Shown piece by piece: positions 4,493-57,903 of a stretch of 64,000 nt of DNA; position 1 is the first letter of the stretch; every line of letters starts with the position of its first letter. The stretch is taken from sequence record OQ722176.1, one strand, 5' to 3'. Below the pieces are notes generated by a model that did no database searches, had not been told where the DNA came from, and saw only the letters and a program-made list of their open reading frames with translations. The position numbers were made by a program, and so were the translations under genes.

Positions 4493-5473
4493 TTATTTGT
4501 TGAGCGTGAACATAGTTACATCGCCTTGAGTTTCAAACGAAGGCTTGTACCCATGCTTGCTACCATATCGTTGGAATAGACGCTTGTACAATCTAACTCG
4601 CTTCTCATTCCCATCTTTGATTGATGTCGCGATTGTATTACAGTTGTATGTCGTTGCGAATTTAACCGTTTCGTTGACTACTGTAGCGAACACTTGAAGC
4701 GGGTTTTCAGACGCGGTTAAATCATTCGTCCAACTTCCCATGTATCGAACTTGAAAATGCACTTCAACGCCGCCAACTGACTCTGGCGGATTGAAATTGA
4801 ACAACTCGCCATTATCACCCCAATTAATATCGTGCGGTACTAGAATAACACGATATGTTTGTTGACCAATCTGAAATAGACCTTCAACTGGCTTTTTGTC
4901 ACCCTTCGGGTCATCGCCTTTCGGATACATTACTTTAGCAGGCTTGTCCATAGATTCAGAGAACAGACTAGATTCACTCAAGTTTACCGATGTTAGCCAT
5001 TCAGACCACGTCTTTTTATTGCCGATTTTAGCAAATGGGATGTCGTCATGATCTAGCCATTGAGCCGAACGGTCATAAGACTGAGTAGTGTTGAACCCAC
5101 GATAATCATCACCAACCCACAGCCATTTGTGGTGCCAGATCTGATTTACTTGACGTGGCTTAGAAACAGCACCGTCTTTGTAAGTAACCATTAAACCAGC
5201 CGCAGGTTCTTGAACAGTATCAAATTCAACTGAGTCATAGAACGCTACCCCACCTTTCTTGTAGTCAATGCGTACGATATTCGGTGTGAATTGTGGATTA
5301 GCAATAGAAACTTGCGTACGAGCATCAGCAACCATTTGCTTGAACTCGTCTGGTACGTAGTCAACGTGAACATATAATGAACCACCGATGTCTTTACCCA
5401 CGCCCCATTTGCTGCGTTTAATCGCGCTACCTTTGCGAGTTTTCAACGTCGCACGTTCAAAAATCATGTTCAT
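4493..5473 (-). CDS. two-domain late protein; N-domain resembles the accessory domain of phosphorothioation-associated methyltransferases; C-domain shared with ORF 49708
   Basis: GKDIGGSLYVH..NIVR..EFDT..QIWHHKWLWVGDDY..IGNKKTWSEWL; C-domain motif KRVRLYKR. Confidence 0.6.
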   Translation of the reverse strand: MNMIFERATLKTRKGSAIKRSKWGVGKDIGGSLYVHVDYVPDEFKQMVADARTQVSIANPQFTPNIVRIDYKKGGVAFYDSVEFDTVQEPAAGLMVTYKDGAVSKPRQVNQIWHHKWLWVGDDYRGFNTTQSYDRSAQWLDHDDIPFAKIGNKKTWSEWLTSVNLSESSLFSESMDKPAKVMYPKGDDPKGDKKPVEGLFQIGQQTYRVILVPHDINWGDNGELFNFNPPESVGGVEVHFQVRYMGSWTNDLTASENPLQVFATVVNETVKFATTYNCNTIATSIKDGNEKRVRLYKRLFQRYGSKHGYKPSFETQGDVTMFTLNK

Positions 5474-6063
5474 CGTCTTGCCTCGTTGGTAATGTTTCTG
5501 ATCATTCGTACTGCGAATTGAGTATCGCCTGTCATTGCTGCTGAAGCTGCCTTATCGACGTAAAACGTGCTATCTTCAATCATGTTCAGGTGATGATAGA
5601 TTTCGCGAAAATCATGTCGGTCGTACTCGCGATCATTGAATCGTAGTGCACCTGCTTTCTTGTCATCATCGTGAACACGCTTGTACTCATCAACGACGCG
5701 AATCATTTCAGCGGCGTATTTCTTCATTGTCATGTTGTCAAGCTTCAGTCTCTTAGCTGCTGCCATGACTTCTTCACGCGGTCTATCAAGCTCAATCGCA
5801 TCTTTTAGAATGTTCAAGCTGTGAATCGTGTCAACGGCTGACTTTTCCATTCTTAGTTTATGTTCTTCAAGAGAACGATTGTGCTTTTTCAATTCACCCG
5901 AAGCAGTTGCACCAGCAATTAAGCCCGCAAATGTACCCCAGAACCCACCTTTTCGTTGCAGACGTTTTTTAACCTCTCCCTTCGAACCTGCGGTCATTGC
6001 TTGAAATTGCGCCCATCGCCCGCTTTTTTTCGCTTTGTCCATTTCTGTTAAAAATTCAATCAT
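5470..6063 (-). CDS. putative internal head protein
   Basis: MIEFLTE capsid-targeting-like N-terminus; TCTAAATA promoter upstream. Confidence 0.55.
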   Translation of the reverse strand: MIEFLTEMDKAKKSGRWAQFQAMTAGSKGEVKKRLQRKGGFWGTFAGLIAGATASGELKKHNRSLEEHKLRMEKSAVDTIHSLNILKDAIELDRPREEVMAAAKRLKLDNMTMKKYAAEMIRVVDEYKRVHDDDKKAGALRFNDREYDRHDFREIYHHLNMIEDSTFYVDKAASAAMTGDTQFAVRMIRNITNEARR

Positions 6064-6088: not shown

Positions 6089-6097
6089 TATTTAGAC
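6089..6097 (-). promoter_or_regulatory. late promoter variant GTCTAAATA
   Basis: Same 9-mer precedes the inh-like operon and gene 34. Confidence 0.7.
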
Positions 6098-54022: not shown

Positions 54023-54262
54023 ATGATAACGATATACACAATTCCTAACTGTGACGGCTGTCGTCACGCTATCTCCCTCTGTAAGTTCAAAAACGTCCCG
54101 TATACTGTAATCGAGTTGCAGTCTCAATCTGACATCGACGAATTGCATAGAAAGCTTGGTGGTGTTCGTAATATTCGAGTTCCGCTTGCCATGCACGGTG
54201 ATACATACATTGGTCACCTGCCTGAATTAAAGCGATTTGTTGATAACCAGACGTATAAATAA
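54023..54262 (+). CDS. glutaredoxin
   Basis: YTIPNCDGC, VP, YIG. Confidence 0.88.
   Translation: MITIYTIPNCDGCRHAISLCKFKNVPYTVIELQSQSDIDELHRKLGGVRNIRVPLAMHGDTYIGHLPELKRFVDNQTYK
54254..54261 (+). promoter_or_regulatory. T4-type late promoter
   Basis: TATAAATA upstream of gene 24. Confidence 0.85.
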
Positions 54263-54320: not shown

Positions 54321-55217
54321 ATGACTGTATCGAATAGTAACGGTTTACCAGACATTGTTACTGTCCAAAAACGAGTATATCCGCTAGTATTTACGGAAAT
54401 CGTTTCTGAACAGCCAACAACCCAGCCCGTTGCAACTGCTTATGGCTTTAAAGCTGTACCTGAAGCTGACGACGGAAGCGGCTGGACTCAATTCGGGTTT
54501 AGACTTGATCGCTGGTATGCTGAAGTAAAATCTTCAAAAATGAAGACTGAAATCTCTCTTGAAACAATTCAAGATATGGCTGCACTTGGTGTTAGCAATA
54601 CTGTTATTGTTGACTCGTTAGCTGACCAAATCGCTGATGAGATCAATAGTGACATTATCGACTCACTAAACGCAATTTCAAGCGTTGGTACTGCTATCAC
54701 TCTTGTGGGTAACAATGATTGGGAAAAAGGTCAAGACCTGTATACTCAAGTTCATTTAGCTGCGGCAGCAATTGAAAAGACAACTGGCTGTAAAGGCACA
54801 TATGTCGTTGCTGGTGGTGATTGTTTTGGTTACTTGACTGGCTGTGGTGTTGTTCAACGTGTCGGTGAATCAGACGTTTATAAAGCATGGTCTGGTCTAT
54901 ACATCGTTCACGACAAATACGCAACTTCTGACTATGTAACTGTTGGTGTTAAGAAAGACTTCGGTGATTACGAAATCTCAAGTTTAGTATTCAGCCCATA
55001 CAAATTTGACCGCGCAACTGATGGTGCAATTGCGTATCAGTACAAAGGCACTGATCCAAAATCATTCCACCCTGTGTATGGTGTTATTGCACGTTATGCA
55101 CTGACTGTTCCGCCACTTGAATCTGGTCAAACAGGCGCAGAAGAAATAGACTGGGACAATCTTGGTGCATTAGCTAACAGTTCTAAACTGTCTTACACAT
55201 ACGCAGTAACAGTATAA
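54321..55217 (+). CDS. 24: capsid vertex protein gp24 (short form)
   Basis: LPDIV..LVFTEIVSEQPTTQPVATAYG; SLETIQDM; IARYAL. Confidence 0.8.
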   Translation: MTVSNSNGLPDIVTVQKRVYPLVFTEIVSEQPTTQPVATAYGFKAVPEADDGSGWTQFGFRLDRWYAEVKSSKMKTEISLETIQDMAALGVSNTVIVDSLADQIADEINSDIIDSLNAISSVGTAITLVGNNDWEKGQDLYTQVHLAAAAIEKTTGCKGTYVVAGGDCFGYLTGCGVVQRVGESDVYKAWSGLYIVHDKYATSDYVTVGVKKDFGDYEISSLVFSPYKFDRATDGAIAYQYKGTDPKSFHPVYGVIARYALTVPPLESGQTGAEEIDWDNLGALANSSKLSYTYAVTV

Positions 55218-55225
55218 GGTGTGAC

Positions 55226-55738
55226 ATGAAAAATCATTATGTAGATAATAAAGCTCTATACGCATCTTTGTGCGAATGGAAAGACGACATGAATAATAAT
55301 CCTGATGCTGTGATCCCCGTCCCAGACGTTGTGGCAATCAGCATCATGAAGATTAGCGAGAACTTATCTCGCCGTTACAACTTTAGTGGTTATACTGCTA
55401 CGTGGAAAGAAGAAATGATTGGTGACGCAATCGAGCACTGTTTGCGTTACATCAAGAATTTCGACACTGACAAATACAACAATCCACACGCTTATATCAC
55501 TCGTATCTGTTTCAATGCGTTCGTGCAACGTATTAAGAAAGAAAGAAAAGATACAGCGATTAAATATAAAGTATTCTTATGCGATTCGTCTAACTACACC
55601 GCTGACGGTGAAGAAACAGACTTCGAGTTTCTTCAGCAAATGTTAGAACGTGTCAATTCTTATGAATCTGGCAAGACGCCTAAAGCTCATGCAGACGAAA
55701 AGAACGAACCAATTAACTTACAGAAATTTTACGATTAA
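55226..55738 (+). CDS. 55: late sigma factor gp55
   Basis: YVDNKAL, LSRRYNFSGYT..EMIGDAIE, NPHAYITRICFNAFVQRIKKE. Confidence 0.97.
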   Translation: MKNHYVDNKALYASLCEWKDDMNNNPDAVIPVPDVVAISIMKISENLSRRYNFSGYTATWKEEMIGDAIEHCLRYIKNFDTDKYNNPHAYITRICFNAFVQRIKKERKDTAIKYKVFLCDSSNYTADGEETDFEFLQQMLERVNSYESGKTPKAHADEKNEPINLQKFYD

Positions 55739-55747
55739 GGAATTAAC

Positions 55748-57193
55748 ATGTTAGGTAACTTTGACTCATTTCTGAGTGAAAATCGCCGTCAAACTCAGGG
55801 TGGAAAAATCTACCCTAAGTTTGGTCAAGTTATTGTTGAGCTAGGCACTGCTTCTACCGAGTTCAGCAAAGGCAAAGGCGTTGAAACAACTATCGGCATG
55901 ATGGAAAAGGCAAATGAGCTTAAATCTATCATGGTATCAAAACTTGCTGAAGATGTCAATGTTGATGAGAAAAACTTCGACATTAATCTAAGCGAGAACG
56001 TAAGCACCATCAACCTGCTTATGGAAAACGAATTCTTAGCAATGCCTGCTCATGCTCTACAGCAAGTTAAGTCAATGATCATGTGTACTGAAGCACGTCT
56101 TCCTAGTATCGTGATTAAAGGCGGTGATTTGAACGATGTAGTGACTGAAGCAACTAAGCTAGGTTACAAAAAATCAGACATTCACGTTGTTATCCCAATG
56201 AGTGAAATGAAGATCAATCTTGCAGATTCTGACAAGCTGATCATTGAATCACTTTCATTTGACGGTCTAACAGCGTCTGAAGTACTTGCGCAAGCTGCAC
56301 CAATCAATCTAGGCGACGTTTACGTTACTGTTGAAAGTGTGTCTAGCGACGCTCAACTTTCTGAAATGAAAGAAATCAAGATCAAGACAGCGAATCGCGC
56401 TATGACACTTGGCTCACTAAACCGCCATGTTATGGATCAATTTGTTGTTAAAGAAGCGAAAGACGTATCATACGCACGTGCTAAAGCTGAAGACAGTGGT
56501 CTACCAATGCTTGAAGGTTTCAAAGCGTACGATATGAAGCAGAAAATCACTATGATTGAACATGCTCAGAACGCATTCACCAAAGAAATTGCACGTGCTC
56601 CGCTTTCTGCTACAGCATGGCAAAATCTTGTAGATGTTAAAGAAGCTTATTTCGATAACGGTTGGAAACTGAAGCACAACAACACAAGCATCGTTCTGAC
56701 AAACGCTGGTAACGCTATGCGTGCTAATCGCGTGTGTGAAGAATATCGCGTTGAGCTATCAGAAGCAGGTTATCCTCTTCTTGATATGGTAGCAATGATG
56801 GAAAGTAAAGGCGCGACTCGTTTCGATTGTAAATCATTTGCTGAAGCAATGATGAAATTCGACGGTTGTGTTACGCCAGAACGTCAAACTGTTACTGCAT
56901 TCGTTACTGAATCAGCGGCAAATCGCGTGTTCCACCCTCAAGTGATGTCAAGCCTACGTCCAGTGACTGAAATGGTCGACGACGTTGACGGTCTTGTTCG
57001 TGCTCTTGCAAATGACCAGTTCAGTTCGTTTAAAGTAGCTCAGTCATTCTCGGAAGCAATGCTTGACCAAGAAACGCTTTACTCTATGATGGAAAGCATC
57101 GTATCTGAAGGCGTAGACGTATCAGTTGACGGCACTTTGATTGATTTCAAAGTAAACGATACGCAATACCACATTAACATCGACATCAAATAA
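55748..57193 (+). CDS. putative internal head protein with degenerate P-loop-like N-domain
   Basis: MLGNFDSFLSE start; YPKFGQVIVELGTAS..KGKG. Confidence 0.5.
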   Translation: MLGNFDSFLSENRRQTQGGKIYPKFGQVIVELGTASTEFSKGKGVETTIGMMEKANELKSIMVSKLAEDVNVDEKNFDINLSENVSTINLLMENEFLAMPAHALQQVKSMIMCTEARLPSIVIKGGDLNDVVTEATKLGYKKSDIHVVIPMSEMKINLADSDKLIIESLSFDGLTASEVLAQAAPINLGDVYVTVESVSSDAQLSEMKEIKIKTANRAMTLGSLNRHVMDQFVVKEAKDVSYARAKAEDSGLPMLEGFKAYDMKQKITMIEHAQNAFTKEIARAPLSATAWQNLVDVKEAYFDNGWKLKHNNTSIVLTNAGNAMRANRVCEEYRVELSEAGYPLLDMVAMMESKGATRFDCKSFAEAMMKFDGCVTPERQTVTAFVTESAANRVFHPQVMSSLRPVTEMVDDVDGLVRALANDQFSSFKVAQSFSEAMLDQETLYSMMESIVSEGVDVSVDGTLIDFKVNDTQYHINIDIK

Positions 57194-57202
57194 GGTGACA
57201 AA

Positions 57203-57850
57203 ATGAAAAAGTTCTGCAATTTTCTATCTGAAGTTCAGAAATACAGTTCAGCGGCTACGTCGATTCGTGGTAAAGAAGTTGCAGCGTTAGTTAAGTTGTT
57301 CAAGTCAGGCATGTTCACGCCTGGCGGAACAGCACTTGATTACGGCGCTGGCAAATACGGTCGTAACGCTGACTTCTTACGTAGCGAAGGTATCAAAACG
57401 TATGCATACGACAAATTCAATGGTACATCGGCAGATGGGTGGGAAGCTGTTAGCTTGACTATTCCAAATGGTGAGACTTTCGATACTGGCTTCACGTCAT
57501 ACGTATTGAACGTTGTACCTGAAGAAGTCGAAGCTGAGATCATCCGTGACGTTGAATCTCGTACACGTGGTAAAGTGTTCCACATTACTCGCGGCACTGA
57601 CATCACACAGACAGTTTTCAACGTGATTTCTGGTAAGTCTAAAAATGACGTAATGATGCAATTCATTGCTCAAGAATATCCAGAGATTCATGGTCAGATT
57701 GTCGCAGGTGGCGGCACTAAAGAACTTGCGAAAGAAATTTCCGAGCGCGGTGTGGTTACAGCTAAAGACAGTTTTCAACGTATCCCAGACTTGTCAAAGT
57801 ACGGTTACAAGAAATCTGGTTCAGGTGCTTCTGTAGTCTGGACAAAATAA
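57203..57850 (+). CDS. class I SAM-dependent methyltransferase with capsid-targeting-like N-terminus
   Basis: ATSIR..LDYGAGKYG..YAYDKF..FDTGFTSYVLNVV; MKKFCNFLSE. Confidence 0.85.
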   Translation: MKKFCNFLSEVQKYSSAATSIRGKEVAALVKLFKSGMFTPGGTALDYGAGKYGRNADFLRSEGIKTYAYDKFNGTSADGWEAVSLTIPNGETFDTGFTSYVLNVVPEEVEAEIIRDVESRTRGKVFHITRGTDITQTVFNVISGKSKNDVMMQFIAQEYPEIHGQIVAGGGTKELAKEISERGVVTAKDSFQRIPDLSKYGYKKSGSGASVVWTK

Positions 57851-57867
57851 TTTCGATTATTTTAAAG

Positions 57868-57903
57868 AAAAGGGTTGCTTCGGCAGCCCTTTTTGCGTAT
57901 TAT
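57868..57903 (+). promoter_or_regulatory. fused terminator/early promoter module
   Basis: AAAAGGGTTGC-TTCG-GCAGCCCTTTTT containing TTGCTT-17-TATTAT. Confidence 0.8.

Follow-up and report, generated by a model that had tools for sequence, protein, structure and literature searches.

We identified, in a 64,000-nucleotide window of sequence record OQ722176.1, a gene predicted to encode a minimal class I S-adenosylmethionine (SAM)-dependent methyltransferase (MTase). The window, by which we mean the whole stretch of DNA that was analysed, comes from the Vibrio phage vB_VspM_VS2 (VS2), a KVP40-like Schizotequatrovirus, and is 100% identical to the corresponding record. We propose, at a probability of roughly 0.5, that the gene supplies the catalytic half of a methylation module of two parts that is carried by viruses, is packaged and injected and serves counter-defence. 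The second half is a partner domain at the other end of the window, in the open reading frame (ORF) that we call ORF326.

57203..57850, plus strand: MTase coding sequence, 215 amino acids (aa), ATG start; orthologue of KVP40.0066, phrog_14016
4493..5473, minus strand: ORF326, 326 aa; orthologue of KVP40.0371, phrog_16075
4979..5473, minus strand: partner domain, aa 1-165 of ORF326

The ORF at 57203..57850, as given in the initial annotation, is confirmed as a real gene and not a chance ORF, because its product is 95% identical to KVP40.0066, the gene occurs in 49 phage records, all of them from Vibrio, and phrog_14016 covers the protein over its full length (E 1e-141). A Shine-Dalgarno-like AAGGTGA lies close 5' of the ATG and provides a good ribosome-binding site. 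The corresponding proteins of phages nt-1 and QD01 are 89% and 98.6% identical to the window MTase, respectively, and as both phages grow on Vibrio natriegens, a laboratory strain, the system is directly testable. A word-index search returned 240 homologues, and at 50% identity the family forms 471 representative clusters. No bacterial or archaeal relative was found in a pattern scan of 185,579 species genomes, a search limited by its pattern that does not prove absence; the same kind of scan on IMG/VR gave 19 loci with MTase relatives. As far as the scan could see, the family thus appears to be restricted to viruses. We found nothing relevant to this gene in the literature.

The sequence motifs on which the initial annotation relied are all present in the translation, and they fall in invariant or near-invariant columns of a 52-sequence alignment of the family.

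aa 19-22 of the MTase, plus strand: TSIR, with T19, S20 and I21 among the invariant or near-invariant columns
57335..57361 (aa 45-53), plus strand: motif I, LDYGAGKYG, the SAM-binding glycine loop after strand 1
aa 67-72 of the MTase, plus strand: YAYDKF, with invariant D70, after strand 2
aa 93-105 of the MTase, plus strand: FDTGFTSYVLNVV, present in the translation as quoted
57479..57520 (aa 93-106), plus strand: strand 4 and catalytic-loop region FDTGFTSYVLNVVP, with a strand at 93-99 in the AlphaFold2 (AF2) model

Within this alignment D46, G48, A49 and G50 of motif I are invariant, as are F93, L102, N103 and V104 of the catalytic-loop region, with D94, V105 and P106 nearly so. An AF2 model built from the family alignment has a predicted local distance difference test score (pLDDT) of 89.9 and a predicted template-modelling score (pTM) of 0.85, with residues 1-11 alone falling below a pLDDT of 50. 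It shows a Rossmann core in which a strand at 43-47 leads into a helix at 54-61 and a further strand spans 65-69. The protein therefore combines the Rossmann-like fold, the glycine-rich motif I and the acidic residue at the end of strand 2 that define class I enzymes. In agreement with this, 43 of the 52 MTase relatives match Methyltransf_23 (PF13489) at E <= 0.01, although the window MTase as a query matched no Pfam family at E <= 0.1 save for one below-threshold DUF match. Foldseek with the model against PDB gave 274 matches (E <= 1e-3); class I MTases make up nearly all of the 50 that were listed. On this evidence the earlier assignment of the protein to the SAM-dependent methyltransferases is upheld. 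At the sequence level PDB yielded nothing useful, whether it was searched with the MTase alone, the MTase profile or the partner profile.

The window MTase shares its fold, its motif I glycine loop and the acidic residue after strand 2 with the TehB/Methyltransf_23 enzymes. Unlike these, its family has an N-terminal GGTSI/AATSI motif, a reduced strand 3 and a family-specific C-terminal module with invariant H127, R130, Q192 and R193. The resemblance to TehB raises the alternative that the protein is a small-molecule or nucleotide MTase, whose substrate would be, for example, a metabolite or a signalling nucleotide and no nucleic-acid polymer. TehB models do recur among the 52 relatives (NF008992 in 27, two further NCBIfam TehB models in 11 each and Pfam TehB in 7), GRNA follows motif I as it does in TehB, and the enzyme is, at 215 aa, very compact. 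The top Foldseek matches include the small-molecule MTases DhpI, CysG, ChlM and TehB as well as the tRNA MTase METTL6 (E ~1e-5); however, they are weak and generic, with template-modelling (TM) scores of 0.4-0.53. In addition, the conserved linkage to a second domain, seen below in CCA-adding, ParB and polyvalent contexts, fits macromolecular targets better. We regard this alternative as quite improbable, and keep a small-molecule substrate in view because of the TehB-like sequence features.

The partner domain was first encountered as a supposed gene at 4979-5473. There is no plus-strand ORF at this position, and the coordinates correspond to the N-terminal half of the minus-strand ORF326, which does represent the other half of the two-domain module. 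The metagenomic protein P0126 (387 aa) has an MTase of the window family as its C-terminal half, and its N-domain shows 42% identity to residues 8-161 of ORF326 (BLASTP, E 5e-32). A second fusion, P0146, matches ORF326 at E 2e-21 (BLASTP). In the metagenomic loci L008 and L029 the partner is a gene of its own immediately downstream of the MTase. The domain is common in viral metagenomes, as the partner alignment picked up 108 relatives in IMG/VR. We fetched 80 of these and sought an MTase-like domain in them with an iterated MTase profile; it was found in the same ORF in 34 cases and in an adjacent ORF in 10 (44 of 80 together), and metagenomes supplied 77 more clusters of the fused type. In cultured phages the two genes are confined to Schizotequatrovirus (MTase in 49 records, partner in 51), and the gap between them is about 52 kb in VS2, KVP40 and MG592456, the records with coordinates that were compared. 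Fusion, neighbourhood and co-occurrence thus link the two functionally, and they support the view that the window holds a split system with an MTase half and a partner half in separate genes.

Several MTase relatives carry other additional domains. The MTase domain follows an N-terminal GNAT acetyltransferase domain in the metagenomic proteins P0137 and P0121, the MTase part of the latter being 57% identical to the window MTase, and further relatives have an N-terminal DUF5661 or a C-terminal LPD11. The C-terminal half of ORF326 (aa 170-311) matches phrog_6387, a family of unknown function, and shows no similarity to the GNAT-MTase fusions P0137 and P0121.

When folded alone by AF2 (alignment A5), the partner domain gave a pLDDT of 95.2. 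Foldseek found no match to this model in PDB (best E 1.1) and one match in BFVD, a member of the domain's own family. The invariant residues are G26, K27, P90, H114, H115, K116, W117, V120, Y124, F127 and S136, and Y34, H36, D122 and D123 are near-invariant; among them are HHKW, VGK and DDY-type residues. These conserved residues look like an active site or a ligand-binding site, and from the model the domain may represent a new fold with an enzymatic or ligand-binding role. Its fusion partners offer further hints. Six IMG/VR loci encode fusions of the partner domain with a CCA-adding nucleotidyltransferase and an HD domain (L057:9260-11446, L058, L060, L061, L103 and L088), and five encode fusions with a ParB/Noc-like domain (L063:9950-11413, L064, L070, L072 and L074). 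The combination of CCA-adding enzymes and ParB as fusion partners suggests a nucleic-acid substrate.

Many of the partner ORFs are 1300-4300 aa long, with MTase-like and partner domains side by side, and giant ORFs of 3600-4300 aa with both domains were found at L092:1625-13795, L050-L052, L065, L089, L093 and L095. The L092 ORF (4057 aa) also has LPD38, PBECR5 and ART-PolyVal, and for this reason we assign it to the phage-type polyvalent proteins in the sense of PMC5512222. Polyvalent proteins are predicted to be packaged and injected (PMC5512222). The module thus resembles the polyvalent proteins and P1 DarB (PMC5512222) in that its relatives sit inside giant phage ORFs and in the concept of an MTase delivered together with the DNA. 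In contrast to the MTases of the polyvalent proteins described there, which are EcoKI/TaqI-like adenine MTases found with LPD36 and SNF2 (PMC5512222), that of the window is TehB-like and has another partner. The window MTase itself is a free-standing single domain of 215 aa and not a large multidomain polypeptide.

ORF326 is preceded by a smaller gene with which it is probably co-transcribed, and the pair may be transcribed late.

5470..6063, minus strand: ORF197, overlapping the start of ORF326 (ATGA); its product starts MIEFLTE
6089-6096, 26 nucleotides upstream of ORF197: late-promoter-like TCTAAATA, one mismatch, weak evidence

The initial annotation had placed the MTase in the family of phosphorothioation-associated methyltransferases, TIGR04096 (dnd_rel_methyl). 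The window protein is a distant relative of one domain of this family and not a member, as it scores 11 bits (E 0.13, aa 29-71 on profile positions 18-59) against the curated NCBIfam cutoff of 150 bits; ORF326 gave no match to the profile at E <= 0.1. What stands is that TIGR04096 is supported as the closest named family for both halves. It ranks first among NCBIfam families for 40 of the 52 MTase relatives (best E 6.6e-8). These relatives align to profile positions 18-153, and members of the partner family align to positions 312-470 (L054 at 51.9 bits, E 5e-14; also L066, L056, L100 and L070). Because the MTase relatives and the partner family match opposite ends of the profile, TIGR04096 proteins are made up of an MTase at the N-terminus and a partner domain at the C-terminus, and the phage has distant counterparts of these two. 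A single polypeptide of about 478 residues with both domains is not present in the window, which has separate genes instead. Thus, the phage module is like TIGR04096 in holding both an MTase and a partner domain, and unlike it in that the domains are encoded by two genes with 52 kb between them, that the middle of the profile (~154-311) is unrepresented and that the phage family is, as far as scanned, restricted to viruses. No proteins named TIGR04096 were present among the homologues taken from the tail of the cluster listing or from the metagenome search for fused types. As we found no literature characterising TIGR04096, its 'dnd-associated' name predicts no activity.

The kinship with TIGR04096 bears on a second alternative, namely that the protein is a packaged DNA MTase through which the phage escapes phosphorothioate-based defence, either by marking its own DNA on entry or by an attack on a Dnd/Ssp component. 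The position of TIGR04096 as nearest named family for both halves favours it, as do the five partner-ParB/Noc-like fusions and the basic character of the two proteins (isoelectric points of 8.8 and 8.6), and packaged DNA MTases have precedents in P1 DarB and the polyvalent-protein MTases (PMC5512222). However, the MTase lacks the DNA-MTase motif IV (DPPY/NPPY or PC), having LNVVP after strand 4 instead; it has no recognisable DNA target-recognition domain, and no DNA MTase family was matched in Pfam or NCBIfam. The score far under the TIGR04096 cutoff and the lack of any characterisation of that family in the searchable literature also speak against it. Likewise, no dnd or ssp genes were present among the annotated neighbours in KVP40 and the metagenomic loci, for which no dedicated search was run. 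We consider this alternative unlikely, and keep a DNA target as such in play in view of P1 DarB as a precedent, the fusions to ParB and the link of the bacterial relatives to dnd.

The proposal that the MTase is packaged starts from its N-terminus.

57203..57232 (codons 1-10), plus strand: MKKFCNFLSE, candidate T4-type capsid-targeting leader with a putative cut by the gp21 protease after Glu10

The first 10 residues of such leaders suffice for capsid targeting, residues 4 and 7 setting targeting and residues 8 and 10 setting processing (PMC9026906). In the T4 record ipII and ipIII start MKTYQEFIAE, and the MTase leader matches them at the mapped positions with F4, F7, L8 and E10. We predicted the VS2 genes heuristically, piece by piece, and compared the 411 resulting N-termini with the pattern M..[FYW]..[FYW][LIVMF].E. 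Three fit, against 0.12 expected from the within-protein rate (P ~3e-4); the pattern was defined post hoc, which makes this P optimistic, and without the MTase 2 are observed against 0.12 expected. The other two fits are MQSFKYFLAE, at the start of a 102-aa ORF (159042-159350 of the VS2 record), and MKSFNQFMIE, at the start of a 117-aa ORF (168806-169159). Both starts have the exact T4 register, and both ORFs are orphans that have no PHROG match and occur in six phage records only; by analogy with the strain variability of T4 internal-protein genes, they are candidate internal proteins. Separately, a 371-aa acidic protein (phrog_11974; 239379-240494 of the VS2 record) starts with a leader-like MKNLKSFMEE, in which position 4 is Leu, and has a tail of poly-Asp/Glu; to judge from its sequence, it may be packaged as well.

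The leader-like features extend to relatives of the MTase. Seven of the eight closest relatives are hydrophobic at positions 4, 7 and 8 and have Glu10, while positions 3, 5, 6 and 9 vary. The fusions P0126, P0124 and P0137 have a leader-like sequence at the extreme N-terminus and not at the domain junction or the MTase core. At four loci (L027, L010, L021 and L020) the leader of the MTase is common to otherwise unrelated neighbour proteins, with a summed similarity of 271 versus 224.7 +/- 12.7 in cross-locus controls. The gene clusters at L027:9489-12856 and L010:7242-10271, in which otherwise unrelated neighbours have one leader in common (for example AKQIIDLFE/AQEIINLFE/ANEIIDIFE), resemble T4 internal-protein loci. 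VS2 encodes an orthologue of the gp21 protease (L013:9112-9753, E 5.4e-50 to PDB 5JBL).

The MTase therefore shares with T4 IPII and IPIII (and Alt), which are packaged in the head, processed by gp21 and injected, a ten-residue leader in which positions 4 and 7 are aromatic, position 8 is aliphatic and position 10 is Glu, together with a late promoter and gp21. It differs from the T4 internal proteins in being an enzyme conserved across the genus and not small and hypervariable; the sequence similarity is limited to the leader, and its packaging is a proposal.

The MTase gene is the last of a run of four genes.

54254..54261, plus strand: late promoter TATAAATA, exact T4-type match, 60 nucleotides upstream of gene 24
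54321..55217, plus strand: gene 24 (head vertex protein), first in the run; Pfam Gp23 at E 3.6e-48 and KVP40 annotation
55226..55738, plus strand: gene 55 (late sigma factor), second in the run; KVP40 annotation and a weak Sigma70_r2 match
55748..57193, plus strand: ORF481, orthologue of KVP40.0065, phrog_14490, function unknown
57867..57899, plus strand: intrinsic terminator with a 12-bp GC-rich stem, UUCG loop and U-run, right after the MTase stop

Between 54262 and 57203 there are no late-promoter sites with one mismatch or fewer. One-mismatch matches to the late promoter are, at 38 versus 62 expected, below chance and so carry no weight. The terminator folds at -18.1 kcal/mol (z = -3.05). 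Given that the sole exact promoter match nearby lies before gene 24 and the terminator after the MTase, 24-55-ORF481-MTase looks like one late-promoted unit. ORF481 is present in all KVP40-like phages and has no known domain; its product starts MLGNFDSFLSE, in which the F..FLSE leader recurs one residue further on, and it does not resemble the extension at the N-terminus of P0121. The comparison of the locus with the T4 alpha-glucosyltransferase gene (a-gt), drawn in the initial annotation, proved loose. The T4 order is 55, a-gt.5 to a-gt.2, mobB, a-gt, 47.1, 47, so a-gt adjoins 47.1/47, whereas the MTase adjoins 55 in the same variable 55-47 interval; we give this positional analogy little weight. 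Gene 24 lies between nrdH and 55 in the KVP40-like phages; the 55.x genes occupy this place in T4, where 24 is in the head cluster.

We propose the following sequence of events. The KVP40-like MTase, carrying its 10-residue T4-type leader M-K-x-F-x-x-F-L-x-E, would be transcribed from the late promoter before gene 24, in a transcript ending at the MTase gene's own terminator. The leader would then take the protein into the prohead core, where the phage gp21 protease would cut it after Leu-Ser-Glu10, and the cleaved MTase would be ejected with the phage DNA. The partner domain might act as a substrate-recognition or co-catalytic subunit, and MTase and partner, using host SAM, would counter host defence by methylating a nucleic-acid target as soon as infection begins. 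On the similarities presented above, the pair is probably injected together with the phage DNA.

Besides the post hoc definition of the leader pattern, the weak and generic fold matches and the lack of motif IV and of a target-recognition domain, several observations weigh against this proposal. The link to TIGR04096 is transitive, running through relatives, given the weak score of the MTase and the lack of an ORF326 match. No recognisable leader is present in 77 of 120 MTase family members, the relatives at L034, L032 and L029 begin at the catalytic core itself, and ORF326 starts with a short MNMIFE that lacks the 10-residue pattern. The literature gave us neither a virion proteome nor a transcriptome for any of the KVP40-like phages, which makes packaging and cleavage purely inferential; the earlier description of a T4-like packaged protein is supported as far as the leader goes, which fits at four mapped positions and is statistically unusual in the genome. 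Finally, the gene 55 product is the late sigma factor and is needed before late transcription. Its place in the run implies that the run is also transcribed earlier, and the MTase is probably also made in the early or middle phase. The gene order and the canonical late promoter before gene 24 agree with the late-promoted run described initially, and purely late expression does not.

The timing implied by gene 55 is one of the points in favour of a third alternative, that of an intracellular, non-packaged RNA modifier. Here the MTase and its partner would methylate phage or host tRNA within a phage toolkit that repairs and protects tRNA against anticodon nucleases, and the N-terminal helix would be merely structural; the Hen1 methylation of Pnkp/Hen1 repair provides an analogue. 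Genes related to RNA are found near the MTase in metagenomic loci. An RNA ligase gene is no more than two genes away in L008 and L010, and in L003 it shares a 6.6-kb contig with the MTase; a SpoU methylase is nearby in L003 and L005, as are Thg1 and a TROVE/Ro-like gene in L010. The six partner-CCA-adding nucleotidyltransferase-HD fusions, the RNase-like PBECR5 domain of the L092 polyvalent protein and the appearance of METTL6 among the Foldseek matches point in the same direction, and KVP40-like phages reportedly carry about 30 tRNA genes. However, no strong recurrent neighbour family emerged among 110 neighbours searched against Pfam, the KVP40-type locus has no RNA-repair neighbours, and the bacterial relatives take their name from an association with genes for DNA phosphorothioation. 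The T4-register leader statistics and the leaders shared with neighbours would be left unexplained. This alternative is compatible with packaging, and differs from our proposal mainly on substrate and timing. We give it an appreciable chance, although we think it unlikely.

Returning to the packaged module, we consider tRNA a serious candidate for its target, as plausible as DNA, because of the RNA ligase, SpoU and Thg1 neighbours and the partner-CCA-enzyme fusions. Overall, tRNA or other RNA would be our first choice, at somewhat less than an even chance, with incoming phage DNA and something else each a little less probable and about equal to one another. The initial annotation described a split, packaged MTase directed at DNA or at a host defence component. 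The split module and the T4-type leader are supported by computation; packaging, target and the connection with phosphorothioation stay inferences, and the genomic contexts favour RNA at least as strongly.

We further speculate that MTases of this family and their orphan-fold partner form an unrecognised, widespread counter-defence module that is delivered with the DNA, by a T4-type capsid-targeting leader or within polyvalent proteins, and methylates nucleic acid of host or phage in the first seconds of infection, with TIGR04096 as its cellular counterpart; we hold this broader idea to be rather doubtful. Examples of its targets would be tRNA that is hit by anticodon nucleases and DNA that is recognised by phosphorothioation-linked restriction. 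Packaged effectors and polyvalent MTase modules are known kinds of system, and we rate the present one as a variant with an orphan-fold partner domain. If our reading is true, KVP40-like phages package an enzyme by means of a T4 leader, and not just small inhibitor proteins, and the repertoire of T4-type internal proteins would gain a methyltransferase that is conserved across a genus. Moreover, one uncharacterised activity would join a bacterial family named for phosphorothioation, the polyvalent proteins and free-standing phage genes.

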